A stretch of DNA of 64,000 nucleotides from Macrostomum lignano (GCA_002269645.1 NIVC01003547.1:1-64000); one strand, 5' to 3'; positions 1-52,748 are shown, numbered from the stretch's first letter. The notes: generated from the letters alone by a model not told the origin. Numbers and translations are program-made.

Positions 1-334
1 TAGCTTACTATAGAGAATCTTTAGTAAGGCTGCACATTTTCAGAGTGCTACAACCGTCCGAGAATATCAAATTTACATGTAGCTTGTAGACTTAAACGGG
101 CAGGCAGCCTGAATACTAGCTGGGGCCCAGATCTAATTTCCTTGGCTGCTATGTATCGAGGCTATACTCAAGTGTAAATATTGTGCTCGGGGGCGCTGTC
201 TGTAAATTGAGGGTGTGACTGTCGTAAAAAGTCAATGGGGCGCCGCCCCCCTCAAATTATACTCAACTGCAATCGAGGACCGGATGTACTATAGGTCAGG
301 TGGCCAATTAAAAACCCAGGAAAAGAATATTGTT

Positions 335-21924: not shown

Positions 21925-22180
21925 TGCCTGTGACGATTCCGTGCGCACGGCTACAGGCACGAAAAATGACCGCATAAGGAGGTTGTGATGCGATTCAAAG
22001 CCATGAGGGCCAACCCCCAAGGCACAGAGAGTGCTCATGCCTGGCGATTAGAAATTCAAAGGGCCGCTGTACACCCTGTGTGAGCGTGTGTGTGAGTGCG
22101 TGCCTGAGTACAGTATTGGCGCGCTTGTGCCTGTACATGTATGTGCTCAGGGGTCAGCGGAACGGGCTGTTTGCCTCAGC
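21925..22180 (+). mobile_element. SINE family 2, decayed copy
   Basis: Body CCCCAAGGCACAGAG..GGGCCGCTGTACACCCTGTGTGAGCGTGTG..CAGCGGAACGGGCTG is shared with copies at ~30.3, ~43.1 and ~51.6 kb. Confidence 0.75.
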
Positions 22181-27020: not shown

Positions 27021-29854
27021 GCCGGCCTATTGGTTGCTTGGAATTTAAGGAACTAATTTCCTATATTTGGCATAAACGACGCAACATCCTTGCCAGTTGC
27101 AAGTACTACTCGTACCAAGTAGCGAGTAAAGAATTTACTGCGTTTCTTTTAATGTATGCACAACAGATTATTTAGATCTTCGGAGATGAGATCGGTTTAG
27201 CCGTTTTTTTCTGAGATAGATCACACACATTTATTCTGAGATAGACAAACCATTTTTAGTACGAGCGTACATTATTGCTGAACCAATAAGCAAGCTGTTT
27301 ATGCCAACAAGCTTGAGATTATAAACTTATCAAAGTCATTTCAGCTGGCTTTATTTTTATAAAATAGCTTATGTATTCTTCTTTGCTACTGAACTGAAAG
27401 TAGAAAGCTGATTTACTAAGTGTATGCCTGAGTGGCCCATCTAGTTATTCTAGTATCTATCAATTGGACGCAGTAAAAACCATATAGGAAGAAAATGGTA
27501 AATTAGCATTTAATACGCGCTTTATAAGGAATTTGTAAAATTCTAGCCAACAGTGCACACTGTGACTGAAGGGCCTTGGCTGTTGTCTTGGCTAGTCTAT
27601 GGGCCATAGACTGCAAAGGCTAAGCAAAGTAACAAAAAAGACATTCACAATGCAGTCATGGTATACTACGAGTATAATTGTCTTCTCTCAAATAATCAAT
27701 ACGCATCTGATTTTGCCACCTGAATTTGATGCTCCTATTAGAATGAAATGTCTCGCCGAGGTTTTCACGCAGGGTTTTTCCATTCGGAATTTCGAGTCTA
27801 GACATTAAGTATAGACTAGATAAAAAAACTAGACTAGATTAGAACTAGAATAGACTAGATTTCAAATTCAAACCCGATTGGATTTGACTTGAAACTCCGA
27901 CTGGACATCCTTTGGCCCAGATGCGCTTCTTTTGGGATCTGGGAAAATCAGAGAGAAGCCGCTGAATAAGATTTAGAATGGGAAATTAAACACATGTTGT
28001 TTTACGAGTATTTAAGCATCTGCACGGGCTTAAGGTTCGAAGCAGAAAGCATTGTAGTTGGAAGTTTATTATAATTCTTGTTAGTTAAAGTTTCTTGGCT
28101 AAATTGAAGATTTTTCTGTCTAGCAAATATCTTTCTGCCAGTTAATTCTGCTTTGCTGGGAGGCTTTCCCGGATATGCAACTTACACCCAGACAGGGCAG
28201 CGGCATCCGCAAGCGGTACCCCCCCCCCCCCCTGGCGCGATGCCAATAGCAAATGCAAGGTGAGGATTCTGCCTCTTTATTTGGCTCTCCTACCTAATCC
28301 ATTGGCATTGCGCCAGAAAATTTGGTGATGCCACCGCCCGAACATGCGACGTAAAGATAAATTGTTTGCACGTCGCATTCGCAAAATGTATTCAACGGGT
28401 AACAATACAAATCCTAGATCAGATCAATGTCATAACACATACAACTTGAAGATTTCATCAAAATGCGACAGGGCAATTCAGTTTTCAAATTTAAAGTCGA
28501 TCACAAGCAAGAAAAATTGGAGAATATGTAGTAACTTTTTTTAGTAAGAGCATCATTATTACGCTAGTATGTATATTATTTAGCTAAACAAATTATTTTA
28601 TTCCGAGGCCAGCTCCGAAACATTAATTGAGTTAATTTATGAGACGAGTCAAAATGTTTTTATGAAAAGTATGCTTTCGCTATTCTGAAAATAATATTTT
28701 CCTTTTTTTCTACGACTTTTTTAAAAAAACTTAAATTTGTTGCAATGTTATTCCAACTTACCTGGCTTCTAGAAGTTTCCTTTTCCCCTTCGCGCATTCT
28801 AGCTCGTACGAGTAAAATTTCCAAATTAAGTATAAGATATTTCCCCATTTTTCCGCGAATTTTTATAGCAAAATATTTCTACGTTTAAACTTTACATAAC
28901 TTTACTTTAATTATTAGCCATATTATTATTTAACGCATTTACCCTTATTAATTACAGTACGTATTATAATAACCGTATCTTTGTTATAATCTAAAGAAAG
29001 TTCCAGAACACCGTTAATTTTCTAAAAACCAAGAAAACCCAGCTAATAATCAAGTTTTTCCGAAATCTCGATTATCAATAACGAAACAAAATAAAGAACC
29101 ATCGCCTTTACGCCTCATTACTTTAATATTGCTACAAATTAAAAACATTTTAAGGACAATTTTTGTGCAACAATACGGGTAGAAAATGGTGAAAAGATAT
29201 ATCATCGAAATAAGAAGATAATTATCGCATAGTTCTTGCCTGTTTTTGATACTTTAAATTACAAAAATGTTCATTTTCACAAATAATTCAACGTTTTCGT
29301 CGCTGCTCATGCCGCAGCAGTAATATTTGAGTGCCAGCGACATTGGAGTGCCAGTGACATCTGACTGTCAGATTTAAGTTTTGGTTAGGGATTTGGTTAG
29401 GGTCTTCAGTCCAGTTCAGGTGGTCAAATTGATGACAGTCAAATGCCAGAAACCCAAAATTGTCATCAGGAATAATTTGCCTGATTATAGTTAACAGAAT
29501 TGCATGTACTGACTAAACAGTGCTGACGACCCAGTCATTGTAAAATATAAGTTAAAAAATCTCAGGTATTTACTATTTAGACACCTGAGAACTCGTCACC
29601 CAAGGCCGAGGTTACGACAATATTTACCGATGGCTATCGATATTTACCGATAATATTTACCGATCGATTATATTTTGAGTAGGCACACAGAAAAATAAAA
29701 GAACCCTGCCAATACGAGTACCTAAACCCAGAGTTTACCCTCAGTTCTTGACGAAGATCCGATAAGCAAGTGACTGCGGACTTTGCAAACTTTTTATTTA
29801 GTGCGAATCTCGTATCTAGCTGCTGCGCACTAATCAATAGGTCTATTTTCGTTT

Positions 29855-30603
29855 CTATCTGCATGGTCTCAGGGCCGAAGCTTCCATTGGCTGTTCTTGG
29901 TTGGCTTCGGCGTCTTTCAACGATCCAAGACCGCGTCGACGGCTGCTAAAAACCAGCATCACGATGACGGCAAAGAGCTGGGCAAGCAGCATTGCCGTCA
30001 CCACCAGACAGATGAGCCAGCCGAAGCCAAGTCCGGTTTCGCTATTCATAGTCCGCGCCGAGCTCGCGCCCACCATGGGCACGTAGTCCGGCTCGTCGCA
30101 GACGTCTCCGGTCCAGCCCGAGGGGCACTGGCAGAAGACTCTCACTTTTGTCAGCGCCTGGCCGATTATGCAAAATTGTTGCGAGTGAAATTGATCAATT
30201 GGTGATGGAGTAATCAGATAAATAGCACTAATTAAGGAGGTAAACGCATCTGACTCTCTTGACTTGGGTCTTTGAGCTCGAATAATTTGGCTGGTGGGTT
30301 TTTGTTCGATTCACACCCATCAGTGACAACCCCCAAGGCACAGAGGGTGTACATGCCTGACGATTAGAGAGTCAGGGCCGCTGTACACCCTGTGTGAGCG
30401 TGTGTATGGGTGCGTGCCTGCGTACAGAAATGGCGCGCTTGTATGTTCTCAGGAGTCAGCGGAATGGGCTGTTTGCGGGACGATGCTACCAAGGTAACTT
30501 TCACCTGACAGAAACCGCCCTCCAGACAGACGCTGCCGTACATGTCCCGGAGGATTTGCAGTTGGCTTTCGGTGCAATTCTTCAGCAGCGTAAATGAACT
30601 CAT
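29855..30603 (-). CDS. Single-EGF-domain membrane protein, paralog A (133 aa from first Met)
   Basis: Exons 30603-30505 (CAG|gtgaaa) and 30157-29855 (ccag|GCG), phase 0. Product MSSFTLLKNCTESQLQILRDMYGSVCLEGGFCQ|ALTKVRVFCQCPSGWTGDVCDEPDYVPM..TM..SRRRG. Six Cys; AATAAA ~57 nt after the stop. Confidence 0.85.
30235..30480 (+). mobile_element. SINE family 2 copy in the intron of EGF-TM paralog A
   Basis: Family 2 body with a partial head (GGAGGTAAACGCATCTGACT), antisense to the gene. Confidence 0.75.
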
Positions 30604-31310
30604 GACTTGCGCTTGTTAGCTTTCACTTGTTAGTCCATCAACAGGTGGCGACACGAAGTTTAAGTAATGCTCTCGCTTTTAGCAGGATGGAGGATTGCAT
30701 GACAGAGTGACATATTTGCCAGTGAAACTTTCCCGCCCCAATTGAAGTAACAGAGTTGACACTGTGCTAATTAAGCGTGGGCGAGGGCTAGACAGACAGA
30801 TTTTCCACAAAGTAAAAGCCGCCAGTCCGCGTTCTTCGCCCTACCCCCGGTGCGAATGCCCACGCAACTATATGCGAATGATTAGAGATATGCTTGTCAG
30901 TAATTTACTTTACAAGCTGTGTTGTACAAAGTAGCCCAAAAAAACTCGAATAAGGTTGCTTGTTGTTAAACGGGGGTGGGAGGAGAAGCGCTGCCCGCGG
31001 ATCAGCCCTAGGGGGCTCTGCCGCATGGATCTAGCTGTGGGCCATACTACCAGGGGGCTTTAAGCCCGAGAGGCCACTATTGGAACCAGAGCTCAGGACT
31101 CTGGGGAGAGCATGGAGCATTGGAGCTACTAACCCAAGCCTATGGACTAAAGACACCGCCAACCCAAAAGTGGAATCAGGCACGGTGCTAGGACAGAGTC
31201 CACTCAGGCCACCACCCAGCAGATAAAAGAATTGGAATGAAAAATGCTTGGGTTACTACTGATAAGCGGTCCGAGAGCGGGGAGACCCTGAAGTCTCGGA
31301 AATGGCTTAA

Positions 31311-31635
31311 TATTGGAGTGAGTCTGGAAGGCTTGTATCCGAGGGCGAGACTCCTATCAGGCAGTGACCATGATACCTATAGGGCTGCAAGCCACAAGGG
31401 TGTCACCTAATCAGCTCTATATTGGAATGAGTCTGGAAGGCTCCGAGGGCGAGTCTCCTATCAGGCAGTGACCATGATACCTTATAGGGCTGCAAGCCAC
31501 AAGGGTGTCACCTAACCAGCTCTATATTGGAATGAGTCTGGAAGGCTCCGAGGGCGAGTCTCCTATCAGGCAGTGACCATGATACCTATAGGGCTGCAAG
31601 CCACAAGGGTGTCACCTATACCAGCTCTATATTGG
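31311..31635. repeat. ~105-bp direct repeat, 3 copies
   Basis: TATTGGAATGAGTCTGGAAGGCTCCGAGGGCGAG..GCCACAAGGGTGTCACCTAA occurs at ~31311, ~31420 and ~31525. Confidence 0.9.
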
Positions 31636-32664
31636 AGGCCAGGCCAAGGGGGCGGAGAGGGGCACAAGGGGCAAGAGGAAACCGGACTCAGCCGGTTTTC
31701 CCCGATTCGGGACGAACATCTGCACATCAAAAAGGGTTTGGTGCTAATTTTTGTTTTCTTTCTCTCAACCGCGTCAGTACTTCAGCGTTTAGCGTTTGGA
31801 GTTCAGGGTCTCAACTCTGAAACGCAAAAGTACAAGTCACATTCGCATCACAATGGTGATTCAGGTTAAGTAATCGAAAAAGAACTAACATCAGATGAGG
31901 ATTTATGTGCGAGTAAGTGTCGCACTTTTGACTGGTAGCTCGAAATTGGAACTCTCCCTGTTGTGAGCGCGGAAACTAAGGGACGAGATTCAGTGTGGAC
32001 GTAATGGGTCTGCAGATTTTTTGCTCCTAGTTTATTTTTTTCAACTGCCATCTCGTCAACCAACTCGTCCACAAATGGAAAGGAACCACTCGTTTGGTCA
32101 CTTCATCAACCCAGTTAACAAAACGGCAGTGGTGGTGGTGGTGGTGGTGGTGGTGGTTCCCGGCCAGAGCTAGTCCGGGAGACGCGCCTCTGGAGGTACT
32201 CGAGCACGCGGCAGCCGTCTACGATGACGGACAGTGACGGGTTTGGTCCGAGGACCTCCGCCCGGATGTCTGCTTGTGTCGGGCATTGGATTATGAGGTA
32301 TTCGTTGACATTTTGACATGCAATCAACCAATCAACCATCTAACAATGCTCTCCTACTTTCGAAAAAAGTGTTCCATTCACCTTCAACAGCAATTTTTTA
32401 ATGTTTAAAAAGATTGCGAAAATGAATTTGACGAGTTCTGATCGATTGCTTGAACGAATGAATATTTGGGTGAAATAAAAGTAAAGTAGAAATTAAAGTT
32501 AACTCAAGCAATGTCAATGTTTCAAAAAGATCAAAGAAAAACTGCATTCAATGAGTATTCACTTCACCATAAAATTCTGGTGGGGCACGGGCCCTCTCAC
32601 TTCGACACAATTCAGGCTGTTCTGAATGCGCTTGAACATTAGCAGGGGCGCCGACTGGGGCGCC

Positions 32665-32937
32665 GTCAAATCTCAGGTCGTCCTCGTCAGAGTTGTGCGG
32701 TTGCGCCGCTGGCTGCAATTGAGGGGCTGCAGGCGATTAAAATGCACGACCCTTTGCTTTCGTGCATTGGCCTCGGGCTGAATGCGGTAGGTGACATCCG
32801 AGATCTGCTTTTTAACGCGCCAAGGCCCAGTCCAACATCGATGAAATTTGCGACTCTCGCCTCGCTTCAGCGCCTGATTGTGCTGCCAGACCAGATCGTC
32901 CTCCCTGAATGCCTCGCCGTGGCACCTCCAGTCTTAC
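32665..32937 (-). pseudogene. Ty3/Gypsy integrase C-terminal (GPY/F) remnant, 3' half of the LINE target
   Basis: Reads DWRCHGEAFREDDLVWQHNQALKRGESRKFHRCWTGPWRVKKQISDVTYRIQ..VVHFNRLQP. Confidence 0.85.
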
Positions 32938-33029
32938 TTACTTACTTACTTACTACTGACGGGGGGCGCAGGCGCCGCGAATAGGCCGCGAGGCCCCTAT
33001 CGCAACCCCAAGGTAAAAGAGCACAAGGA

Positions 33030-38240
<5,211 letters not shown>

Positions 38241-39260
38241 CCCTGCCCAAGTAGCGCATCGAGACCGAAGACTGCTAAAATCGCATCGAGGCTCTCTAAG
38301 ACTATTCCGCTGATGCTGTCCTTCAAAATTTTGAACACTTAGACTGCTGACAGCTTTTCGAGCCACGGTAGAGCTTGTGGCGAGCTTCACTGCTATCGCC
38401 TTCCAGAGGAAGCTTTACGACTTACGCCAACCTGTCTTTAATTCTCAGGGTGTTAAACCTTAGGCTTTATTGTTAGTATCGGTCCCGCAGTCTGAAGCAC
38501 TGCTTGAGTAAGCCATGAATGCAGGCAATGGACAGAGCCATTCGACGACGTCTGTAACAGACGAGCTTGGAGCCTGTGCCCACGTCTGAGGTTCATAAAT
38601 TTACAGTTTGTAGGGCACAAGGTATGAGACCGTAAGTCAAAGCCAATTTCGATTTTACTTGAATGCTATCATCAAGCTCCATATTACTCAATGCAGTCGA
38701 GTTTAGTAAAGTAAAGGCAGTATGCAGAAAGAGAATCAAAATTCAGAGATACTCGAGTAAGTGCGAATATTTCGTGAAGAAGTTACAGTAAGCCAGGGAC
38801 CTCACTAGAAAAACAAAGTCGATGTTACTTTTAAAGTCGATGAATTGCTCTCAAAGAGCAAACACATGGGATATTAATAGGTCTTCTGAATTAGGAGAAA
38901 TTCTAACTGGAAAACTTTTTTGCAGCACCCTAAACTGCAATACAGAAAAAAGTTTGCCCGTAGTAAAAGATAAACGGGCAAGATAGCAGCACTTGCATAG
39001 CTGTGTACCGCAGTGAACTCAAACATGGAGGCCGCCTAAGTGAAATCAAGCAACTCGGGGCTTACATACTCGTAGAAAAGTCACGGTAAAAAGAAACTTC
39101 AGTAAAATATGAGTTCCAAAGTCAAAAAAGAGCCAGAAGATAATATAAATACAAACTGTCAAATCAGTACAGAATCTTGCAAAAATAACATCTAAAAGCG
39201 ATGAGATAAATATTGTAGACTGCCATAGGATAGATCGATTGTACATTAATAAAAATTAGG

Positions 39261-40058
39261 TCAGGTGTCATTCTCCTCTACGGGCAGGACGGCGACACTC
39301 TCGGCTTTATCGGCCCTCTGAGGCTCGTGGCGTCGGCGACGGAGGTGACGATTGAGACTGCGCCGGTAAAGGACCACCCCGGCAACTATGAACAGTACGA
39401 TAGCTAGCAGGAAGGCCGCAACAAGGACTATTGAGAACAGGCCGCTCAGGCCGGCTCCGGAGCTGGCCATGGGTACGTAGTCCGGCTCGTCGCAGAGGTC
39501 ACCCGTCCATCCGGTGGGGCACTGGCAGAAAAGTCGTCCCGGAGGAATCGACTTGAATAAAGATAGGGTTGGAATCGGTTATAATGGTTGCTTTGGTTAT
39601 CTAGTTGGCTTACAAATGACTGTAGCTAGCCCCTCAGCTAGCGAGGAGATGAGCAGAATGTCAATTCCACTGATTTGTTCACGGATTCATTAGGGTGTGT
39701 AGCATAGTAGTACACTTTGATCCAGACTTTCAAATCTTCAGGTACTGCACATGTCTTTGTAACTCCTCGAGGGGTTGAACTGCCCGGAAATCTCCACGCC
39801 AATATTTGTGTGATAAACCCAAATTAAAGGTGGCCGAGCAAAAAAGTCAGATGCATTTACCATTGAGCTACTCTGCCTCCAGGGTCGTACTTGTACTCGT
39901 AGATTGCCTTCAACTCCCAGTTTACAGGGACCCTAAGGCAGCTGCGCAGTCCTTACCCGACAATGTCCGCCTTCCTGACACAAGCCGCCATACAGCTCGA
40001 CGAGTATCGTCAGCTCCCGGTCTGTGCAGTTCGTGATCGGTGGCACCGTCATTCGCAT
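39261..40058 (-). CDS. Single-EGF-domain membrane protein, paralog B (130 aa from first Met)
   Basis: Exons 40058-39957 (CGG|gtaagg) and 39551-39261 (ttcaag|TCG), phase 0. Product MRMTVPPITNCTDRELTILVELYGGLCQEGGHCR|SIPPGRLFCQCPTGWTGDLCDEPDYVPM..TM..YRRS. Confidence 0.85.
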
Positions 40059-40419
40059 TGTTGGCACCGTTTCTTGTTTATTGATTCTTTCTTGATTGAG
40101 CAGGGCTTAATTACCCGGTATTGTGGTTCATCAAGTTTATTGTCGTGTCAAGGGTATAGATGGAAGTAACTTGACGCGCGGAGGAGAGGCGCAAAATGAC
40201 AGTTGTTTTAGTTGTAAATCTTAGAATAGAATAGGGCATAGAATGGACGGCAGGCTCAGGAGCGCTGCTTTAATACGTGTATGCGCTAATGCGGGGGTGG
40301 CTGAGCAGGTGGGTAATGAGTGAGAGAAGTACTGCAAGCTGGACACGCTATGTATTTACTGCTGGCTGTGAGCCGACGCACAATCATAAGTTTCGGTTTT
40401 GATAGTTTTTCATTTGTAG

Positions 40420-40771
40420 CAAGGGGTCGGCAAAATGTTTCACCTCAAGGCCAGATGGAGAATCCAGCGTATGACTGCGGACCAGGTAGAGGAGAGAGGA
40501 AGTGGGAATACAGATAGGAGAAAGGAGAGGAGGCGACGGAATAAATGAGAAGAGAGAAGACAAGAGGAGAGGAGAGAGGAGAGAAAGGAGAAGAGTAGAG
40601 AGGAAGAGAATAGAGAAAGAGAGGAGAGAGGAGACAAGAAGAGAGGAGAGATGAGAGAAGGGAGCTTGAGCAGACTGGATTGCTATTGTGAAGCTTCAGA
40701 GGATCCGAGGGCTGGATAAAGAGGCTTTGCTGGCTGCATGTGGCCCGCGGGCCGGATTTCACTGACCCCTG
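40420..40771. mobile_element. hAT (Charlie-like) MITE with internal GA-rich low-complexity tract
   Basis: Termini CAAGGGGTCGGCAA and CTGACCCCTG; flanks ATTTGTAG and ATTTTTAG match at 7 of 8 positions as a TSD. Confidence 0.65.
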
Positions 40772-40837
40772 ATTTTTAGCATTGATTTTATTGGCCACGG
40801 TACGCTCGTATTGCTACAGAGTCATAGAGATTTTTCA

Positions 40838-41340
40838 TGCAGACACTCCCTGACACCACAGACACTCCCTGACACCACAGACACTCCCTGACACCACAGA
40901 CACTCCCTGACACCACAGACACTCCCTGACACCACAGAAACTCCCTGACACCACAGACACTCCCTGACACCACAGAAACTCCCTGGCACCACCGACACTC
41001 CCTGACACCACAGATACTCCCTGACACCACAGACACTCCCTGACACCACAGACACTCCCTGACACCACAGATACTCCCTGACACCACAGACACTCCCTGA
41101 CACTACAGACACTCCCTGACACCACAGACACTCCCTGACGCCACAGACACTCCCTGACACTACAGAAACTCCCTGACACCACAGACACTCCCTGACACCA
41201 CAGATACTCCCTGACACCACAGACACTCCCTGACACCACAGACACTCCCTGACACTAAAAACAGACACTCCCTGACACCACAGACACTCCCTGACACCAC
41301 AGACACTCCCTGACACAACAGATACTCCCTGACACCACAT
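40838..41340. repeat. 20-bp minisatellite (CAGACACTCCCTGACACCAC)n
   Basis: About 25 copies; the ORFs cycle every 20 aa. Confidence 0.96.
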
Positions 41341-42539
41341 CGGGGCGCCCAAAATTAAGTTATTTTTGACTAAAGCTGCCGTGCGCTGATTGACGTCTGT
41401 GCGATGTAAGCTCCTCTTTTATGCATCACAATAGCATCGCCTGTTTAACTGCACAAGGGCAAAGCATTACTTGCTACCGGCTCAAGGGCTTTTCGAATCT
41501 GCCGGGACTAAAAATAGCATTTGAGTTACAGATCATCAAAATTGAGCAAGCACCCCCACCGTGTTTACACCTTTGGCTGAGGCTATGAAAGTGGTCCCTT
41601 GGTTACGCATGGCGTGTATGAGCAGAATTAAGACACCGAGTAAGTAGTCTTAAGCATTCTAGCATATTAGGGCTATGCGGCATGCATTAAACGCGCATTG
41701 CAATAAGCTAATAACAAAAAATATTTAACTACTGGCAGTAGGGCATATAGAACATAGTCTGCTACAAAGCAAAAAAGTTATTTTTCTAATTAAGACGTCA
41801 GTTTCCACATGAACAGTTACAGTCTGAGGTGGGTTGACAAGGTTGTTAAGGTCAATTTTTTTATGCTGCTGGAAGCTTTGAAATTTTAATTTGATAATTA
41901 TTTCAGCCTGTTATCCACGTTGTCAGTTTGTTTTACCGCGTGTGTTTCTAAGAAATACCGTACTGTTTGAAATGTATTTTAATCGCCAGTCGCAAGTGCA
42001 GCAACGCCCAACCCACCAGTGAACCGAGCTTCTATCTTATTATCTACTTCTAACACCACCATGGACACAATTTACCATTGTATGATTTTGGAGGGGTATT
42101 TTGGAGTCTACCGATAATATGAACAATTGATGCACGCCTTTTCGAATGTCAGCAGGCAGTAGTGTATGTCGATTGGCCGAATCCCGATTGCATGGCCTCT
42201 TGTCTGGAAAAACCTGCCTTCGCACGCAAAAAGTAGATGCATTCGATTCGCAGTTCCGTGCTGCCGAAACCAATTGCATAGAAAGGAATCCGCACACTTT
42301 GCAATGTTTTATTTTTCAAGAGTGCATAATTATATTCGTTGCAAGTTCGAGATATGCTAAGTCGAAAAAATATTGTTAAATGAACGTCTGGTATCATGGC
42401 TCAATTTGTCGAAATGGGATGTTTGATTTGAAACACACATTGATCTGTTATTATCTTAAAGGGAATCCATAAATATCAACATACATCAATATATACATAT
42501 ATTGTATATCAATGCATCAGTAAAAAGCAAAGAAAAAGT

Positions 42540-43391
42540 TCAGGACTTCAACTGAGCGCCTTCAGCGCCGATAATGAGCTGATCGAATTGCAGATTGTGG
42601 CTGCCCGCATTCTCCAGGCTGCTGGTTGAGCTGGCTACCAGCAGTTCGATGTGCCGCCGGCGTCGCTTAGTTGCCATAGAAACAGCTACGAAGGAAGCCA
42701 CTGCCAGCAGGGCCAGCAGCACAGCAGCAGCGGCCAGGATGAGCAGAACCGGCCAGCCGCTCGGGGTCGGTTGAGACAGGCTGGCGCCCACCATGGGCAC
42801 GTAGTCGGGCTCGTCACAGACGTCCCCGGTCCAGCCCGACGGGCACTGGCAGAAGACTCTCACTTTTGTCAGAGCCTAAAGGCGATTATGCAAGTGAAAT
42901 TGGACAATTATATGATAGTTACCGTTAGCAGATAAAAAACACTAATTTTTGGTGCCGGAGCAGCTCAGAGGTAAAGGCATTTGCTAGCTGCCTCTCGTAC
43001 CACGACCCCTGGTTCGATTCCGCGGTGCACACTCATCTTAATTTGAGGCTTTGAGTACGAAAAATTGGCCAGGGGTTTTGAGCGATTCACAAGCATGAGG
43101 GCCAACCTCCAAAGGCACAGAGTGTACATGCCTGCATGACGATTAGAAAGGCAGGGCCGTGGTGCATCCTGTGTGAGCGTGTGTGCATGTATGACGTGTT
43201 CAGGAGTCAGCAGAAAGGGCCAGGGTTCTTACAACTCCCCTGCGAGTAATAATTATTAGATTATCACTAATTATTCAAGCTTTAATTGTCACCTGACAGA
43301 AACCGCCCTCCAGACAGACGCTGCCGTACATGTCCCGGAGGATTTGCAGTTGGCTTTCGGTGCAATTCTTCAGCAACGGAAATGAACTCAT
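42540..43391 (-). CDS. Single-EGF-domain membrane protein, paralog C (144 aa from first Met)
   Basis: Exons 43391-43293 (CAG|gtgaca) and 42875-42540 (tttag|GCT), phase 0. The EGF region is nearly identical to paralog A; the TM and tail differ (..TKRRRRH..). Confidence 0.87.
42955..43225 (+). mobile_element. SINE family 2, copy with tRNA-like head, in the intron of paralog C
   Basis: A-box-like AGCTCAGAGGTAAAG, B box GGTTCGATTCC, then the family 2 body. Confidence 0.8.
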
Positions 43392-43499
43392 GACTGTATT
43401 TGATATGGCTGTAATTCTTAGTCTATCGACAGGTAGCAGCACGAATTTTGGGTAATACTCTCGTTTTTAGCGGGATGGAGGATTGATTGCAGAGCGGTA

Positions 43500-43507
43500 T
43501 ATTTATA
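43500..43507 (-). promoter_or_regulatory. Putative TATA box of EGF-TM paralog C
   Basis: TATAAATA on the minus strand ~110 bp upstream of the ATG at 43391. Confidence 0.4.
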
Positions 43508-44102
43508 GCCAAGCAAGTGTGGCATTGCCCCTCCCCCAATTGAAGTAATAGTTGACATGCTATTAAGCGTGGGCGAGGGCTAGACAGACAGGCCTGCCAC
43601 AAAGTAAAAGATGGTCCGCGTTCTTCGCTCTACCCCCCAAAAACAAGCAAGAATGCGAATGCCCTCGAAACTGTATGCCAATGATGAGAGATGATACGCT
43701 TGTCGGCAATTCATTTTACAAGGTTGTTACTTAGAGAAATTCCGTTTTTTGGTTGTTTGAAATAACGTCCAAAAAATAGGTGTGTTTTGCTTCAGGTTGT
43801 AAACACAATGAAATTAAAAAGTAGAACGGCGAGAATTTATGAGTAATGTGTCGCACTCTGGACTGTAGCTCGAAAAGGAACATTCGAACTCACGCTGTTG
43901 TCCTTTAGCGCAGAAACCTAAAAGACAAGATTTAGTCAAGGTCCTTGGATTCAGTGTAGACGTAATGGATCCTAGACAGATTTTTTCGGATCCTAGTCAT
44001 TGCGTCGACTGCCATTTCGTCAACTCATCCACAAATGGAGGGGACACTCGCTTGGTCACTTTGTCAAACAGTCTATAATAAGATAAGCACCGTCGGTCAC
44101 TG

Positions 44103-44240
44103 TGTCAACTGCCACTAGGATAACCCCAAATCTTTGGCCACGTCGTCAACTGCCACTAGGGTAACCCAGAATCTTTGGCCACGTCATCAACTACCACTAG
44201 GGTAACCCTAAATCTTTGGTCACTTCGTCAACCCAGTTGA
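44103..44240. repeat. ~40-bp repeat, 3 copies (TCAACTGCCACTAGGGTAACCC..ATCTTTGGCCACG)
   Basis: Directly visible. Confidence 0.85.
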
Positions 44241-44739
44241 TGAAACGGCAGTTAACGAAGTCACGGACTTCTTAAGGGCTTTTATATGCTTATGTGCAAG
44301 TATTAGTTAGTTCGAAAGTGTTGTGGTGACTCTGAAAGTTTCAGGAGTCAAATGACAGAGTCAAATGAAGTCAAATGAAGAGTCAAGTGACATGACAGGA
44401 AGAATGAACAGTAGGCCGTGACCAGAGGACAAAGCATTGTGGTATTGAGAGATAATGTACACAGGGAGGGATATAGGGGATATCAAGAGATTGTGAGAGA
44501 AAGAATCTAGGACAGCGGATGAGGGGACAGCCAGCTCTCATTAAAAATGGGTTCGTACTCTTTTTGACCCAGCTTTCGTCTATGTACTGTAGATCTAACT
44601 CATTGACTTGATGCGAGGCTTTATCTCTTGAGTTCTATCGATCTCTCAGTTTCTCCAACCACTCTTGCTTCTCTCGATCCCAGTCTGTCACGAGATAGCA
44701 TCTGTAGTGCTCACGCGAGCTCAATTTATATGTACATCG

Positions 44740-47700
44740 GCCTTGCCCTCAGGAAGCAGCCAGGTGGGTCAGCCCGCGAGCCGCCAAAGACTAACAGCAA
44801 ATGCATCCGCTGCGGAGAGTCTGGACACCGAAGCTGCAACAAGGCCCAGGGCAAGAAGTGCGATAGCTGTGGCAAGATGAACCCCTCGCTAAGGCTTGTC
44901 TCAGTAGCCGTTCGCGCATCAACGCACTTGGCCACAACTCGGACGAACCGACCGACCAGTCATACGAGGAAGTGTTCTGCACGCTGGAAGACAAGAACGG
45001 GAGCGCAAAGTTCGTCATCAGCATCAACGGCCACGCAGTCAGGGCGCTCATCGACAGCGGAGCGAGCTGCAACGTGCTCGACCTGTGCACCTTCAGGCGG
45101 ATCAGCAACCCGGGCACCAGGATCGAGCCCTGCAGCACAAGGGTTTTCCCACTTGGCGCAAGCCAACCGCTGCATGGCCGTTGAGGGACAAGCCAGGCTG
45201 ATCGTGTCGGCAAACGGGCACAAGCTGCAGCCGAACTTCATCATCATAAAAAGCAGCTGCACCCCATCATCGGAAGACAGACCAGCACCGAGCTCGGCAT
45301 GCTACAGGTCGACCCGCTACAAGCAACCCGTATTAGTGGCAGGTCTCACCGGGTCACGAAGCATCAACGACCAGCACCCGACCGACAACCCGCAGCTGCA
45401 AAGCGTCCTGACCGAATTCGAGGATAGGTTTCACGGCATCGGCTGCGTCAAAGGCGTCCGCGTTACCATCAAGCTGCGTCCCGAAGCCACGCCAACATGC
45501 CAAGCACCATCACGCGTGCCAGTGCACCTCAGAGACGCCGTCAGAAAAGAGCTGGAAGAGCAGCTTGCTCAGGGCATCATCGAGCGTGTCCACGGACCTA
45601 CAGCATGGTGCTCAAGAATGGTGGCTGTTCCAAAAGACGACAAGGGACAAGGGAATCCGTATCACCCAGGATCTCCGCGAGGTCAACAAATTCGTGATTC
45701 CCGAGAAGCAACCGATTCCCACATTTGAGGAGGTTACGGACGAGATTTTTCTCAGAGTTAGATGTCGCCAAGGCCTTTCATCAAATCGAGGTGGCCGAAG
45801 ATTCGAGGGAGCTCCTGACCTTCTCAACGCCACTAGGCCTTATGCGACTGAGGCGCCTCTGCATGGGCTATACGTCAGCCTCCGAAATACTGCAGCGACT
45901 GTTCTGAGCGGACTCCCAGCGTGCGCTGGGTACACGACGACATCCTCATCTACGCCAAGTGTATCGAAGAGCACAACCAGCGACTGCGCGACTGTCTGCA
46001 GCGGCTGTGAGACCACAATATCACTCTCAACAGGGCGAAGTGCAGGTTCGCGCAGCAAGAAGTCGACTTCCTCGCCATGCGCCTCACAGCAGCCGGAATC
46101 CATCCCAGCACAGAGAAGGTGGCGGCCATTAACTGCTTCTAAAGACCGACCAACGCTACCGAGGTCAGCCTCGTCACCTTTGTCGCTCGCTTCATTAGCA
46201 ACCTGTCCGACAGGGCACGGCCGCTCCGAGATCTGACAAAGCACGGGGCAGAGTGGACGTGGGGCGACCATCAAGAAGCAGCTTTCATCGACATCAAGCG
46301 CACGATAGCCAGTTGCCAGGCGCTGGCATTCTTCAGCAAAGACCTGCAGTCCCAGCTGATTGTCGATGCCAGTCCAACCGGAGCCGGCGTCATCCTAGCC
46401 CAAGTGCAGCCTGATGGTTCGATTCGACCGGTGGCCTACGCGAGCCGCAGCCTCAGCGCCACCGAGCAGCGGTACTCGCAGACCGAGCGCGAGGCACTCG
46501 CAGTAAAGTATGGCTGCCTAAAATTTCATCATTATCTCAGCGGCTGTGAGCACTTTAAAGTCATAACTGACCACAGACCGCTCGTCTCGATGTTCAGCCC
46601 AGGATCTCGGCCGCATGGGTCTCGGCCGCAGAATTGAACACATGGCTCTCCGACTGCAGGACCTTGCCTTCAGCGTCGTTTACCAGCCCGGAGCCGGAAA
46701 CCCGTCCGACGTGCTCAGCCGGCAACCGCTACCGCAGCCGCCAAACAACGGAGGCGAGCGGGCCGACGCAGCGTTCGTTACCATGGTCATCCAGGCGGCG
46801 ACTCCGGTGTCTCTCAGCATATCAGCGATCAAGGCGGCTTCGGAGCAGGACCCGACAGTGCAGGCTGCATGCCGCGCCATTCGCACTGGCAGCGGATCTA
46901 AAAGACATCCGAGGCGTCAGGCACGAGCTGTCGGAACACGATGGCCTCCTATTGCGCGGCAGCCAGCTGTTCGTGCCTGGGGTGCTGCGGTTCCGGTGCC
47001 TTCAACTGCCCTATCAAGGACACCAAGGCATGCGGAAGACACTAGACCGCCTGCAGTCAAAGGTGTGGTGGCCCGGCATGCGCTCGGCAGTGGAGACTCA
47101 TGTGGCCACCTGCATCAGCTGCGCGGCATGCAACAGCGAGGCGACTACGAAGGCAACGCCCTTGAAGCCGACGGATCTGCCGGATGGGCCATGGCTCGAT
47201 CTCGGCCTTGACTTCCTGGGGCCCGTCAAAGGAAAGTCGTTACTCGTCTGCACCGATCACTTTTCTCGATTTCCGCTGGTTGAAGTTATGGCAGACACAA
47301 CGGCCGCCGCCACCATACGCGTGCTCAGACGGTGGTTTAGCATCTTCGGCCAGCCGCTCAAGGTGTCAACCGACAACGGGCCGCCTTTCTCATCATCGGA
47401 TTTCACCAGCTTCCTGAAAGACCAAGGAGTCCACCATCGTCGGATCACGCCGCTCTACCCGCAGGCTAACGGAGCCACCGAGCGCTGCAACAAGGGGCCT
47501 CAACAAAGCCATACGCTCAGATGTCACCGAAGGCAAAGACTGGACGGCAGCTGTCGACGAATACCTGGCCGCGTACCGGCGCACGCCGCACAGCTCGACA
47601 GGAGTCGCCCCAGCTAACCTGCTCTTCGGACGCCAGGTCAATGAGACAATCCCCAGTCTTCACCACTCGCGACCTGTGAAAGCGACGCTTGTACATCGGC
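44740..47700 (+). mobile_element. Decayed Ty3/Gypsy gag-pol (gag knuckles, PR, RT, RH, IN); no LTRs found
   Basis: Motifs CIRCGESGH..CDSCGK, LIDSGASCN, QDLREVN, LDVAKAFHQ, DDILIY, IVDASPTG, AYASRSLS..YSQTEREAL, TDHRPL, GHQG..CISC, LDFLGP and TDNGPPF..PLYPQANGATER. In-frame stops at 46008 and 46140 plus several frameshifts. The Mag-like affinity is inference. Confidence 0.93.
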
Positions 47701-49075
47701 TTTGCGTACAATTCATGCACTTCAAGTGCGGCGATTCTCCACCCCCTCACTCTGGTGGCGTGATTTTATTTCATACGGTAGTCTGAAAATAAATAAATAT
47801 CGATCAGCCCACCTAGCAGGGCTCCACCTTTCGTCTCAGCAAACTCTGGCCTTTCTTACTATAGCCATTACAAGGACAGAAGAGACGAGACGAGTCGAGA
47901 AAGCCAATTGTCAAGTCAAGTCAAGTCAAGTCAAGTCCATGGACCTACAGCATGGTGCTCAAGAATGGTGGCTGGTTAATTAGCAACGGCAGAGGAGCAA
48001 GCAATGAAACCACTTGGGTCGCAGTTCTTCTAATTGTGCATGCGAATCGTCAGATGTAATATGTTGCTATGGGGGGGGGCGAGGCTAGGCTAGTTGAGGG
48101 TGGTTGGTTGCCGTTTTTTTTTCATAATTGTAGCCATTGAGGAGGACTCAGGCCCGGATGAGGCTAATCTATTGAGTTTCGCCGTCTCAAGTGGCGTCAG
48201 CACCAGCACGTGTCGATCCACCCCCTTAGATACATGTAGCTTAATTAATTGGCTTTCAAATTGAAGCGTTCTTTATTAATTCCTTCTGGGGAGGACCCTT
48301 TGCTGGAGGAATTTCAGTGAAGGCCTTTTTCTGTTTAGGGTCTGAACAAAAACAATTTTTTTGCGCTGGTTTTCTGTTAACTTATCGCTAAAAAATGAAC
48401 CGACAATCAAAGGCACCAAAGTTCCTTATTTTATTTCCAAATTGCTTAAGACTAACTAGTAAGTATTAAAACAAAGAAATAACTCTGCGTTGTAATAAAA
48501 ATAAGAAAGGACTAAAATTGACTAGTGATGTACAGAAACTAGTTTATTTACAATACGATTTGATTTTGAAGCAATTTCTTAAATTTTTCTTTGGCAGAAT
48601 TTTCTAGAATATTCACCAGTGACGACTGCAAATTGGAAAACAAACGTGTATATAGATAGACGTTATTAATAGTTATCGTTCGTCGAAAAAAGTGTCGTTT
48701 ATTCTAGAACGTCTTGAAGTTTTTTGTGTAGGCCCTAGTCAACAAGCAAACAATTATGCGATTACTCACTGAGATAGCTCATTTATTTTGTATAAAATGA
48801 ATAAAACGAGATCAGTCTATTCAGTTAGGCCCTAGGCGGCAGGGCAGGCCAGTTAAGCCTATACTACAGCCTACAGCTACAGGTACAGCATATGTGAGCC
48901 TAGGCCTAATAAAGAATAGAAAAGCAAGATGTTAGTAGACCTAATGCTTTGTATATGACAACGAAGTAGGCTGAAGGGGGCCTGAAGCCTGAAAGCCATA
49001 TTGACTAATGACTATAGGCCTATGTCAGTCTACATATTTTTAAAAGCCTTAGGACTAAGGACTTGAGTGTGGCAC

Positions 49076-49530
49076 CTGGTAAAATGAGGAATCTGCAGCA
49101 GAATCAGAATGAAATAGCTTGCTAAAATGCGGAAACTGTAGTGGAATGGTAAAATGCAGAATGAGCAATGGAATCTATTAACTTTAACTAAAATGCACAC
49201 GCAAAGTAGCTAAAGTGCATTATGATCTATTATATATAATCTTATAACAATAAAGCTTTCAAAATTTTACTAGACTTCTAGAAAGGAAATTGATAATAAT
49301 TTTCAACACCCATTAGCCATATTATTCACAAGAGAACCTATAATATCTTTTTTATACAGTTAAAATGCTATAGGCAAAACTATATATTTTGCATTTTACT
49401 TCAAGTTAGGCCCAGTGGATTATGCAGTTGATTTTACATTTTACCATTTTGCTAGGCCCTACAGATTCTGCATTTTACTGTGCTATTCTATTCTATTCCA
49501 ATTCCATTAAAGATTCTGCATTTTACTGGG
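49076..49530. mobile_element. Possible decayed MITE with GTAAAATGCAGAAT-type inverted ends
   Basis: GGTAAAATG..GAATC repeats on the left, GATTCTGCATTTTAC repeats on the right; no TSD found. Confidence 0.4.
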
Positions 49531-49777
49531 GAGGGTAGGCTACTCATAAGTGTAACATTGGCATGGTACACATTTTTGTCTAAAAATGTTCTGGAGCATA
49601 GTGGACATAATCCTGATTATGGTCTATATCCATATCTATCTGTGACCCTGGTTGTCTAAATTTTTATAGCCTAATTATATCATTGCTAATTAATGAATAA
49701 TTTCCTGTTTTACTCTTCCTATAACTTTTAATAATTTAAAATCAAATGGCAATCACTCTCTATTGTTTACTATAGAG

Positions 49778-50511
49778 CAGGGGTCGGCAAACTTTTTTCA
49801 GTGCGGGCTGGATTGGACGACTGGCTGAGGTGGTGGGCCAAAAAAATGCACAACAAATTGAGGCTATAAATGACAATTTGGTATCCTATAGAATCGTTTG
49901 TTAAATTATTTTTTCGCTTGAATTTAATTCATTTCTAATTTTAGAGTAAAAATGTAAACAAGTGAACAATCCAACAGTTTAACATGTACTGGCAGCTAAA
50001 TTGTTTGTTATAGTTAATTGCCAAATCAAATTAAAAAATTGTGGAAAAATGTGTCCTGGATAAAATTACCCAGTGACACTATTACCCCTATTACCCAACG
50101 TTAAAATAGTACCCTCGTGTCGTGATGTGGCAATTGACTATAACAAACAATTTAGCTGCCAGTATATTTAATTGTAAACTGTTAGATTGTTCACTTGTTT
50201 CATATTTTTGGACTCTAAAAATAGAAAGAAATCGAATTCAAATAAAAATTAATTTAACGAACGATTCTACTAAAGGATAGCCGACAATTTTATATGATAG
50301 ACCAAATGCCACCAACAACACGACAATTGAAATTGACACAGTATTGTGATAGGAATGCCGAGGTGAAAGCTAATTTTGCTTGAAAAGTTGAATGTTTCAA
50401 CACAAAATTGGTTCGCGGGCCACTTTTACATTGTCAGATAGTAAGAGTGCTGCGGGCCGGACTTGAAGATGACGCGGGCTGGATCTGCGGGCCGCAGTTT
50501 GCTGACCCCTG
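49778..50511. mobile_element. hAT (Charlie-like) MITE, 734 bp, with perfect 8-bp TSD
   Basis: TIRs CAGGGGTCGGCAAAC and GTTTGCTGACCCCTG; TSD CTATAGAG at 49770-49777 and 50512-50519. Confidence 0.93.
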
Positions 50512-50547
50512 CTATAGAGTAACTCTATTATTTTATTTATTTAGGGG

Positions 50548-51690
50548 GGCCATAGCCTAGCAGTAGCGCAGCTGCTCTGGTGTGCCAGCGACCTAGGCTC
50601 GATTCCAAGTGCAGTCACATTAATTTAGGGCTGAATTAGAATCTCAGCTTGGCTCTGCTTGTGCAATTAATGGCCTTGAGAGACGGTTCCTGGACACTTC
50701 GTCATCTTACTACTTCGTCATCCACTCATATTTCTAGACACTTCGTCATCTTACCACTTCGTCATCTACGATACTATTGTGGACACATCGTCATCTACTC
50801 CCTGGACACTTCGTCATCCACTTTGTCTGAAAAACTTATTGAATGAATAGCTATATGTAACTTTGTCAGCTAAGTTGTATTGAGTAGTCATAAATATAGG
50901 TGGCTACACTGAGTATTAACTAACTGATTAACTAACTGATAATTAATGTGGATTAACTATGACAGGGGAAGAGCTGGAGAAGAGAAGATATCGTGATCAG
51001 TACAAAATTAAATTCTACTCGCGGTTTTGAATACATACAAAATCTTGTAATCATACAGTGAAACAAAAATAATAATGAATTGTAAATTTGCATACCTGAA
51101 TAGCAAAATTAAATACAATTTAAAAAATAAATAATAATAAATACTAAAAAATACACTATTCATAAACATAATTAAATCTACATTGTTACAACTCCACACA
51201 TGGTTATGGAAGCGAAGCTATAATAAAATTACAATCAACACTTGTACACATATAGCGTGCATTTAGATGCCAATTATAGCGAGAAGTTAAATCCCTAAAC
51301 ATGTATTTAATCCTATATTTTACATACTATTGATTGAGAAACAATTTACATATATAAAAAACAATCGAATAACAATTTTACAGCTTTGCAAAATCTTGCG
51401 ATGACGAAGTGTCCTCAAAATTTGGTCACTTCGTCATCTAGATTTCTAACAATTTTTTTGTATGATGAAGTGTCCAAAAACCATGGTCACTTCGTCATCT
51501 GGATGACAAACTGGTAAGATGACGAAGTGTCTAGGAACCTGAGAGACAACCCCCCAAGGCGCAGTAAAGTGTACATGCCTAACAATAAAATAAAGTTAGG
51601 GCCACTGTGGATTCCTGTGTGATTGTGTGCCTGCATATGTATCCGCGCGCTTGTATGCCTGCTCAGTGGAGTTGGCGGAATGGGCAGTAA
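50548..51690 (+). mobile_element. SINE family 2 copy split by a MITE
   Basis: The tRNA-like head (TAGCCTAGCAGTAGCG..GGCTCGATTCC) at 50548-50684 resumes as the body CCCCCAAGGCGCAG.. after 51540. Confidence 0.7.
50685..51539. mobile_element. 855-bp MITE with 26-bp TIRs and 8-bp TSD (Merlin-like)
   Basis: TIR GGTTCCT(G/A)GACACTTCGTCATCTTAC at 50685-50710 and 51514-51539; TSD TGAGAGAC at 50677-50684 and 51540-51547; subterminal CACTTCGTCATC repeats. Confidence 0.9.
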
Positions 51691-52617: not shown

Positions 52618-52748
52618 ATTTGATTCCTGGGTTGACGAGGTTGTGGTCCAATATTGACCTTGTGCATGACTGTTTGCCTCCTTGCTTGCTGTCATTGCCT
52701 TAATTTTTGCCATTGCCAATAACTCACTTGGTCTTGCAGCTTGCATAA

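Follow-up and report, generated by a model that had tools for sequence, protein, structure and literature searches.

On the minus strand of the analysed Macrostomum lignano DNA (64 kb, the window) lie three two-exon genes, here called A, B and C, which encode proteins of 133, 130 (from the first ATG) and 144 aa. We read them, with a probability of roughly 0.55, as intact, constrained and unannotated paralogs of one family, which in macrostomids would correspond to the putative EGFR ligands Smed-egf-3/4/5 of planarians and have the layout of neuregulin-4 (NRG4). That they are real genes of the PAA62311/PAA62310 family of M. lignano is highly probable, and that they are EGFR ligands is a tentative proposal from sequence to which we assign somewhat less than even odds. 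The family products consist of a 6-9 residue N-terminus, one EGF domain with an N-glycosylatable site, a short stalk, a TM helix and a basic tail, the glycosylation and the cytoplasmic location of the tail being predicted.

Gene models

Exon 1 of gene A (CDS 30505-30603; this and all features below are on the minus strand) encodes Met1-Gln33 with the N-terminus, the NCT sequon and Cys1-Cys3, and exon 2 (29855-30157, stop included) encodes Cys4-Cys6, CDEPDYVPM, the TM helix, RRR and the tail; an AATAAA is located at about 29793-29798, 57 nt 3' of the stop. The intervening intron (30158-30504) has 347 nt and the borders CAG/GTGAAA...GGCCAG/GCG. In gene B, exon 1 (39957-40058, Met1-Arg34) is separated by a 405-nt intron (39552-39956, CGG/GTAAGG...TTCAAG/TCG) from exon 2 with its stop (39261-39551), and gene C comprises exon 1 (43293-43391, Met1-Gln33), a 417-nt intron (42876-43292, CAG/GTGACA...CTTTAG/GCT) and exon 2 with its stop (42540-42875), the second exons of both genes being assigned from sequence and hydropathy. 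All introns are GT..AG introns in phase 0 between Cys3 and Cys4, and the models of three minus-strand genes proposed in the earlier note, with products of 130-144 aa, thus hold. The cis-donor consensus of M. lignano is GT[G/A]AG (PMC8629364), with which the gene B donor agrees and the donors of A (GTGAAA) and C (GTGACA) fit only partially. The spliced junction of gene B, CR/SIPPGRLFC, aligns without gaps to CRKIPPGKLYC of the intronless paralog PAA62311 (P0008), and the predicted splice junction is validated by this gapless alignment. Part of the gene A intron matches a repeat at 21991-22174, and the gene C intron carries a tRNA-like, SINE-like insertion that gene A does not have.

Protein architecture

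The cysteine spacing C-x15-C-x5-C-x9-C-x-C-x8-C is common to A, B and C, and the N-C-T sequon at Cys1 and the CDEPDYVPM segment are invariant. Each protein contains a single hydrophobic segment (Kyte-Doolittle 19-residue maximum 2.8-3.3), which is followed by a basic cluster (RRR, RRSLNRHLRRRRH or KRRRRH); no hydrophobic N-terminus or signal peptide is found in any of them (Kyte-Doolittle maximum 0.25-0.43). The shared spacing, sequon, stalk, helix and post-TM basic cluster that had been described beforehand are therefore present in 3/3, and the minimal EGF-TM layout lacking a signal peptide is borne out by hydropathy. The precursor of human NRG4 is likewise reduced to a single EGF domain plus a TM segment and lacks a signal peptide, and the analogy drawn to it previously is apt, as the minimal layout is the same.

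Six cysteines in EGF order, together with Pfam scores at or just above the gathering cut-offs (PF00008, EGF: 22.0-22.4 bits, cut-off 21.5; PF07974, EGF_2: 21.9-24.0 bits, cut-off 22.1), assign the predicted proteins to the EGF-like domains, the Pfam EGF match spanning Cys2-Cys6 only, with Cys1 15 residues upstream. C[LQ]EGG[FH]C and G-W-T-G occur in all three and provide the conserved C2-C3 loop Gly and the aromatic-x-Gly before Cys6 that are typical of ErbB/EGFR ligands; these positions align to NRG1 and to an EGF/TGFalpha chimera. The EGF fold is defined by a two-stranded major sheet and disulfides C1-C3, C2-C4 and C5-C6; AF2 models, which are of low confidence (pLDDT 53 and 62), place a hairpin at residues 32-36/40-44 and a helix in the C1-C2 loop, and a Foldseek search with the ectodomain model gave the NRG1beta-ErbB4 complex 3u7u as the best match (E 0.04, probability 0.96).

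Annotated paralogs and 5' ends

As the description of the genes as hidden had implied, no protein matching A, B or C is held in the searched collections, including the transcript-based M. lignano protein set. An exhaustive profile search over 1.84 billion proteins, which also returned many unrelated small EGF-TM proteins, yielded P0008 (E 2e-14, profile positions 7-108, identical Cys spacing) and P0033/P0124 (P0033: E 3.5e-6, positions 8-116) as the best matches of the same architecture. P0008/P0123 correspond to PAA62311.1/PAA55319.1 (BOX15_Mlig002914g1, Mlig030020g1) and P0124 to PAA62310.1/PAA55318.1 (Mlig022086g1/g2), all annotated as hypothetical EGF-like proteins of M. lignano, unlike the unannotated A, B and C. 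Like A, B and C, PAA62311 and PAA62310 are encoded in tandem; a distance of 8.4 kb separates these two, which share one strand. The ectodomains of A, B and C are 41-49% identical to those of P0008/P0124 (tblastn), and full-length similarity, domain order and the N-C-T motif place the three predicted proteins in this EGF-TM family. Shared features are NCT at Cys1, the EGF domain, the TM segment, the basic cluster and the lack of a signal peptide, and P0008 also has the same C-x15-C-x5-C-x9-C-x-C-x8-C pattern. In contrast to A, B and C, the coding region of P0008/P0124 is unbroken between Cys3 and Cys4 (the P0008 CDS being intronless), DTPDFLGA or TETCYMPS takes the place of DEPDYVPM in the stalk, and the cytoplasmic tails are unrelated.

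The M. lignano annotation was built from transcripts (PMC5730564), and the signal-peptide-less start of these paralogs therefore has RNA support. The AGs for which the earlier note had entered a caveat are all present (30612, 30606, 40106 and 43394), and the models might be incomplete, with the ATG exons being internal and joined via such an AG to an unseen 5' exon, for instance one encoding a signal peptide, or to further EGF exons of a larger protein. This would suit the AG that A and C have 2 nt before the ATG, the gene C TACAG, which agrees in part with the [T/C]TNCAG motif of trans-splice acceptors (PMC8629364), and the reading frame of gene C, which has no stop in the 26 codons preceding its ATG. 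However, in-frame stops precede the ATG by 5 codons in A and by 18 in B, the window, the stretches between the three genes included, contains no further EGF-like module in any frame, and no ATG-initiated hydrophobic ORF is present in the conserved upstream sequence that A and C share. Moreover, a putative TATAAATA (TATA) box, read from the sequence, lies about 110 nt 5' of the gene C ATG (43500-43507), and an SL added at these AGs would, given its sequence (PMC8629364), end in an ATG that is not in frame with the gene (ATG TCA TGA). Since the transcript-based models of P0008 and P0124 as well as the Smed-egf-3/4/5 cDNAs begin at the equivalent Met, without a signal peptide, we regard an unseen signal-peptide exon as unlikely, and incomplete models of either kind as quite improbable. 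SL trans-splicing at the AG just 5' of the ATG, adding no coding sequence, is possible.

Resemblance to planarian EGF-type ligands

Smed-egf-3/4/5 were described earlier as putative EGFR ligands (Barberán, Martín-Durán & Cebrià 2016, PMC4914847); they have about 110-125 aa, lack a signal peptide and start with MERNCTADE.., MYKNCSITE.. and MEVDCNPQE.., respectively (PMC4914847). Like A, B and C, they comprise one EGF domain with a long acidic C1-C2 loop (of 13 residues in the planarian proteins), followed there by C6-x-Y-[YF]-D-P, then a stalk that is short, a TM segment and a short basic tail, and Smed-egf-3 and -4 also carry N-C-T/S at Cys1, where Smed-egf-5 has D-C-N and no sequon. They differ in C3-C4 (14 residues vs 9 in A, B and C) and in retaining the Arg before Cys6 (GKRC, HGRC). 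With an HMM built from all five M. lignano family members, Smed-egf-3, -4 and -5 scored 18.9, 15.5 and 10.7 bits, so that the likeness is one of architecture and in sequence not statistically significant, and other spiralian EGF ligands and NRG4, whose sequence was entered by hand in the scoring and alignment, reached 29-33.

Judged by a single EGF domain that precedes a TM segment, Cys1 at most 10 residues after Met within N-C-[ST], a long acidic C1-C2 loop and no signal peptide, the predicted A, B and C proteins fit the layout of the flatworm signal-peptide-less putative EGF-type ligands (the Smed-egf-1..5 group). A new family, as had been suggested for A, B and C, is contradicted by the two annotated M. 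lignano paralog types and by the Smed-egf-3/4/5 layout; it was rejected in view of the identical Cys spacing of P0008 and the matching layout of Smed-egf-3/4/5 and NRG4. Of the earlier interpretation as a whole, the gene models, the layout, the tandem expansion and the NRG4 analogy stand and the new family does not: the genes have no entry in public protein sets, yet candidate growth-factor ligands of their type were known before from planarians. Smed-egf-3/4/5 are expressed in the pharynx and CNS, and silencing Smed-egf-1 to -5 one at a time by RNAi produced no visible phenotype (PMC4914847).

Candidate ligand function

The best per-domain PDB matches were the EGF/TGFalpha chimera (29.8 bits), NRG1 (29) and mouse EGF (27.8), compared with about 21-22 for the best single Notch1 repeats; for gene B alone, NRG1 scored 21.9 bits and the best Notch repeat 18.7, and ErbB ligands are thus preferred over Notch-type repeats by only 3-8 bits. 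The motif CP..[FW]TGD.C is common to NRG1 and A, B and C, and the NRG likeness is one of layout, fold match and sequence match. ErbB/EGFR ligands follow the spacing CX7CX4-5CX10-13CXCX8C, with about 7 residues in C1-C2 and 10-13 in C3-C4; A, B and C fit it in C2-C3, C4-C5 and C5-C6, but not in C1-C2 (15, vs 7 in NRG) or C3-C4 (9, vs 13 in NRG). Every known EGFR ligand listed in the Barberán supplement has an Arg directly before Cys6 (EGF Arg41) (PMC4914847), as does NRG, whereas this Arg is absent in 5/5 M. lignano family members, being replaced by a hydrophobic residue (GDVC in A and C, GDLC in B, NDIC in P0008 and GDIC in P0124).

The missing Arg and the atypical C1-C2 and C3-C4 loops speak for genes that are real but encode membrane-displayed EGF proteins other than EGFR ligands, acting in adhesion, as partners of another receptor, or as EGFR decoys or antagonists. 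In the same direction point CxCxxGWTGxxC combined with a loop of 9 residues, as Notch- or teneurin-type repeats typically have, sub-threshold Pfam matches to EGF_Teneurin and Delta/Jagged, Notch1 and factor XII repeats that score within a few bits of NRG1, and the many unrelated small EGF-TM proteins from the exhaustive search. Nevertheless, ErbB ligands are the best matches both per domain and in fold, the precursors of A, B and C have the single EGF domain and TM segment that serve as the criterion for flatworm EGFR ligands (PMC4914847), and the invariant post-Cys6 segment is what would be expected of a binding tail; we consider a non-ligand role unlikely, though a serious contender. For the EGFR ligand reading, eight EGFRs but only two ligands have been reported for M. 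lignano, which makes a ligand function of the predicted proteins plausible.

In such a ligand, the TM helix would act as a reverse signal-anchor, there being no cleavable signal peptide, with the basic cluster kept in the cytosol (positive-inside rule) and the N-terminal EGF domain of about 65 residues translocated, disulfide-bonded and glycosylated at N-C-T. The tethered ligand displayed in this way would consist of the EGF domain and the invariant C6-DEPDYVPM tail; it might be shed at the small-residue stalk and would bind one or more of the eight EGFRs. We also speculate, at longer odds than for a non-ligand role, that A, B and C with P0008 and P0124 make up a Macrostomum-specific EGF-type ligand subfamily with a long C1-C2 loop and no canonical Arg, which would engage the receptor via the invariant C6-DEPDYVPM tail in a manner unlike that of canonical ligands or act as a membrane-tethered antagonist; if true, the "missing" ligands of the expanded set of eight EGFRs would be found in this subfamily.

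Paralogy and selection within the window

Similarity among A, B and C is far above chance (tblastn E-values between 1e-14 and 1e-23 for exon 2, while exon 1 of B vs A/C gives about 1e-6), and local tandem expansion, as suggested before, is confirmed by three paralogs in a row. The homology of A and C extends over 30062-30916 and 42780-43722, respectively, with 70.6% identity in 977 columns (blastn); it covers the upstream region, exon 1, the intron and the EGF half of exon 2 and ends abruptly past ...VPMVGAS. Within it, identity falls exactly at the predicted exon borders, at both ends of the gene A intron, from 94-98% in the exons (98% in exon 1) to 66% in the intron and 76% upstream. Over the EGF and stalk region, A and C differ by 0 nonsynonymous and 5 synonymous changes, an outcome with a neutral probability of about 5e-4 (hand calculation, the neutral chance per change being the synonymous share of sites, 35.7 of 165), and dN/dS vs B is 0.21 for A and 0.12 for C. 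The exons are under purifying selection.

These figures weigh against A, B and C being silent or decaying duplicates, i.e. untranscribed pseudogenes, as do the exon conservation far above that of the intron and flanks and the intact state of 3/3 ORFs and 6/6 splice sites. Silent duplicates would explain the absence from the transcript-based annotation, and the want of a matching protein in the searched collections, the LINE, gypsy and minisatellite sequence around the loci and the lack of the TATA box in gene A, where an 8-nt deletion at the position homologous to the gene C box leaves GGCAAATATG, are in keeping with them; we nonetheless hold decay to be very improbable. That the window is M. 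lignano DNA is shown by its Cdc37, 99% identical to the protein of this species, and by an identity of about 97% between its DNA and contig NIVC01000352.1.

Gene models and constraint

Short ORFs lie in three pairs on the minus strand between positions 29855 and 43391, and in silico splicing joins them into three two-exon genes, in agreement with what the earlier note had read from the DNA. Gene A (exon 1 at 30505-30603, exon 2 at 29855-30157, intron of 347 nt) encodes 133 aa, gene B (39957-40058 and 39261-39551, intron of 405 nt) encodes 130 aa, and gene C (43293-43391 and 42540-42875, intron of 417 nt) encodes 144 aa. The three introns are GT..AG introns in phase 0, each located between Cys3 and Cys4, as had been proposed. 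The Cys spacing C-x15-C-x5-C-x9-C-x-C-x8-C, the NCT sequon at Cys1 and the segment CDEPDYVPM claimed for the family are indeed invariant in all three spliced proteins. Hydropathy analysis revealed one strongly hydrophobic segment per protein, followed by a basic cluster, and no hydrophobic N-terminus in any of the three, which bears out the predicted single helix, Arg cluster and lack of a signal peptide. A larger multi-EGF gene with these as its last exons, named beforehand as a refuting case, is rejected, as tblastn and a six-frame pattern scan of the 64-kb window detected neither a fourth copy nor any further EGF-like module.

Genes A and C share 98% identity over exon 1 and 94% over the EGF-coding half of exon 2, against 66% in the intron and 76% upstream, with the shifts falling exactly at the predicted splice sites. 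Within the 55-codon EGF and stalk region there are no nonsynonymous and five synonymous changes, and dN/dS relative to gene B is 0.21 for A and 0.12 for C. These analyses show the gene structure, the domain content, the paralogy and the constraint of A, B and C, and we consider the three to be most probably real genes of the EGF-TM family of the annotated Macrostomum lignano paralogs P0008 and P0124 (probability about 0.85). That the loci are silent copies is highly improbable beside these figures, even with their proteins missing from the searched collections (see below). Uniform recent gene conversion as the source of the A/C identity is also out, since intron and flanks are far more diverged than the exons.

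Paralogs and absence from protein collections

When 1.84 billion representative proteins were searched exhaustively with a profile, P0008 (151 aa, E 2e-14) was the best match of the same architecture, with Cys spacing identical to that of A, B and C, NCT at Cys1, no signal peptide, and a TM segment followed by RRHRQHR; P0033 and P0124 (117 and 118 aa) came next. P0008 and P0124 are M. lignano proteins annotated as "hypothetical, EGF-like domain-containing", with neighbouring accession numbers, and their genes sit on a single contig in the same orientation, separated by 8.4 kb. The P0008 CDS is intronless (456 nt, equal to 151 codons plus stop) and its alignment with gene B runs through the predicted junction without a gap (CR/SIPPGRLFC in B, with the junction at the slash, and CRKIPPGKLYC in P0008), thus providing an independent validation of the gene B splice prediction. 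No DNA similarity between the P0008/P0124 locus and the window was found by blastn.

In a word-index search protein C had no match at E <= 1, a profile of eight family sequences matched only the two known M. lignano clusters, and exact look-up in the protein collection found none of A, B, C or the LINE ORF of the window. The genes were rightly called hidden, as neither their proteins nor close relatives were found in the collections searched by word index, exact look-up and exhaustive profile. The claim of a new family, on the other hand, does not hold in view of the two annotated paralog types and the already described layout of the planarian putative EGFR ligands Smed-egf-3/4/5: A, B and C are new, unannotated members of a kind already known. 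They also illustrate that the transcript-based M. lignano annotation misses short two-exon genes.

The 5' ends

The AG dinucleotides that the earlier note had pointed out upstream of the ATGs are present, and with them it had allowed for an unseen signal-peptide exon. In-frame stops lie 5 codons upstream of the ATG in gene A and 18 codons upstream in gene B, and in gene C a TATAAATA box can be read about 110 nt before the ATG. The M. lignano annotation rests on RNA-seq transcripts, together with trans-splice and poly(A) data (PMC5730564); the P0008 and P0124 models, which start at the equivalent Met, thus have transcript support. The planarian Smed-egf-3/4/5 cDNAs also begin at the equivalent Met. 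Taken together, the paralog starts, in-frame stops, TATAAATA box and planarian cDNA starts make an additional signal-peptide exon unlikely, and that the gene models are incomplete is very doubtful.

Between 30 and 39% of M. lignano genes are trans-spliced, with the acceptor motif [T/C]TNCAG (PMC5730564, PMC8629364). Spliced-leader (SL) trans-splicing of A, B and C at the AG adjoining the ATG is possible, and would add no coding sequence, since the ATG that ends the SL would not be in frame. The first mini-exon annotated for P0124 (18825-18846 of locus L001 on contig NIVC01001952.1, upstream of the P0124 gene) ends in ...GGTCCTTTAGCGAGACTCAATG followed by GTGAGT. It is similar to the spliced leader of 35 nt, ...GGTCTCTTACTGCGAAGACTCAAT..GCATG followed by GTAAG (local score 25, with the 99th percentile of random windows at 23). 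Given this likeness, the annotated initial Met of P0124 (MNMTENCT) may stem from an SL-like exon or from the ATG of the SL itself.

Type of EGF domain and putative function

Pfam EGF and EGF_2 match A, B and C at or just above threshold, from Cys2 onward. In PDB matches counted domain by domain, the family profile scored highest with an EGF/TGFalpha chimera (29.8 bits), NRG1 (29.0), mouse EGF (27.8) and heregulin (27.4), compared with about 21-22 bits for the best single Notch1 repeats; with gene B alone, ErbB ligands were still ahead of Notch-type repeats, by a margin of only about 3 bits. AlphaFold2 gave an unusable model of full-length C from three sequences (pLDDT 53) and a low-confidence ectodomain model from five (pLDDT 62), whose only notable Foldseek match, to be taken as a hint, was NRG1beta in complex with ErbB4 (E 0.04). 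A Gly in the C2-C3 loop and an aromatic-x-Gly before Cys6 are present in A, B and C, as in ErbB ligands. The 15 residues between C1 and C2 and the 9 between C3 and C4 count against a canonical ErbB ligand, and all five M. lignano family members have V, L or I directly ahead of Cys6, at the position where the known ligands listed by Barberán et al. (2016) carry Arg. The consistent loss of this Arg offers a natural test of how strict the requirement is.

Barberán et al. (2016; PMC4914847) defined the EGF-type putative ligands of flatworms by a single EGF domain together with a TM. Their Smed-egf-3 (MERNCTADELLYEKDKTFC...), Smed-egf-4 (MYKNCSITESLDEFGEKLC...) and Smed-egf-5 (MEVDCNPQESLYIDGGKYC...) resemble A, B and C in lacking a signal peptide, in having Cys1 within the first few residues, and in the succession of a long acidic C1-C2 loop, EGF domain, short stalk, TM and short tail; the N-C-T/S sequon around Cys1 is shared by Smed-egf-3 and -4, but not by Smed-egf-5. 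The score of the M. lignano family HMM against these three proteins was not significant on its own, so the link to the planarian group is architectural, resting on layout and N-terminal motifs. P0008-like strings were not found in the legible part of the supplement to Barberán et al. (2016). The likeness to human neuregulin-4 drawn in the earlier note is sound, as NRG4 has the same minimal plan.

A, B and C would be membrane proteins of type III (N-out) topology that use a reverse signal-anchor for insertion, and the EGF domain, presumably carrying a glycan at NCT, would be exposed at the cell surface. There it could serve as a tethered or shed ligand for at least one M. lignano EGFR, and the invariant segment after Cys6 might contribute to the binding surface. 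The ligand role proposed in the earlier note is reasonable, and we tentatively regard the three proteins as putative EGFR ligands, at somewhat less than even odds. A non-ligand EGF-TM protein or an antagonist, for which the unusual loop lengths and the missing Arg could speak, is a somewhat less likely alternative, against which the PDB ranking counts. M. lignano serves as a transgenic model for stem cells and regeneration, and neoblast behaviour is under EGFR signalling in planarians, acoels and cestodes. Eight EGFRs and only two ligands were reported for M. lignano, and no gross phenotype resulted when Smed-egf-1 to -5 were knocked down singly by RNAi (PMC4914847); flatworm small EGF-like ligands are known to act via EGFRs, as in planarian nrg-7/egfr-3 and Echinococcus EmNRG/EmER1 (PMC12963305). 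A, B and C, together with the two annotated "hypothetical" paralog types, would increase the number of candidate M. lignano ligands several-fold and provide specific genes to study by in situ hybridisation, RNAi and receptor-binding assays.

History of the cluster

Homology between A and C extends over 30062-30916 and 42780-43722, with patches further upstream, and breaks off inside exon 2 directly after ...VPMVGAS (30062 and 42780, respectively). Beyond this point the TM and tail DNA is 38% identical, no better than random sequence, and despite this unrelated DNA both genes specify a TM helix with an Arg cluster behind it. Such a pattern is suggestive of genes of chimeric origin, or of conversion between older paralogs that was limited to their 5' parts. 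Read most simply, A and C are older paralogs with diverged tails, whose 5' parts, from promoter to mid-exon 2, were later replaced by duplication or conversion at a dS of about 0.15, the exons since having been kept by selection. Gene B is old (dS >1). It is 58% identical to A in the first half of the EGF domain, yet 89% identical in the 63-64 nt of the FCQC...DEPDYVPM stretch (39467-39530 in B, 30073-30136 in A), and, counting synonymous sites, the two genes differ only once over the 27 nt of CDEPDYVPM. The likeness suggests that a tract was converted locally or that the nucleotides themselves are constrained.

Other features of the window

Further genes comprise a rhodopsin-family GPCR in a single ORF (12824-14518, plus strand), a Band-7/stomatin exon (19526-19954, minus), the first exon of Cdc37 (about 52749-53516, plus; 99% identical to M. 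lignano BOX15_Mlig015904g1, next best about 50%) and a FYVE protein (60355-61047, plus). Positions 47509-63998, the only part spanned by the alignment, match contig NIVC01000352.1 at about 97%, and two FYVE genes are called near the homologous Cdc37 there. That contig carries an insertion of about 6.3 kb (897-7232 of locus L002, around Cdc37) relative to window position 48410/48411, and is about 97% identical elsewhere; window and contig represent distinct copies or haplotypes of this locus. GCA_002269645.1 is known for large duplicated blocks (>=95% identity; PMC5730564), and the window is either such a block or from another assembly or line relative to NIVC01000352.1.

A nearly full-length non-LTR retrotransposon (33155-37685, minus) lies between A and B, with ORF1 (36846-37685), an endonuclease-like ORF without a Pfam match (36274-36846) and a 961-aa RT and RNase H ORF (33155-36040), all on the minus strand. 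LTR-retrotransposon pol remnants were located at 44628-47617 (plus; Integrase_H2C2 and rve domains) and 37675-38259 (minus; a 194-aa integrase-like ORF without a Pfam match at 1e-5). The intron of gene C contains an inserted tRNA-like, SINE-like repeat (about 42957-43040) with a GGTTCGATTCC T-loop motif on the plus strand, and related copies occur in the gene A intron (30307-30476) and near 22 kb (21981-22174). ARAGORN called no tRNA in these repeats, and Rfam and ARAGORN found nothing in the window.

Tandem repeats comprise a 19-nt minisatellite of 26 copies between B and C (40840-41339) and two three-copy arrays, one with a 105-nt unit upstream of gene A (31310-31636), the other with a 41-nt unit upstream of gene C (44104-44232). 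Long minisatellite arrays at 252-959, 4162-4914, 6255-6805, 7055-7713, 15134-17973, 55402-56659 and 61477-62055 give rise to spurious long ORFs in several frames. The richness of the window in LINE, gypsy and minisatellite sequence fits M. lignano, and the minisatellite arrays agree with the reported 15% of simple and tandem repeats in this species.
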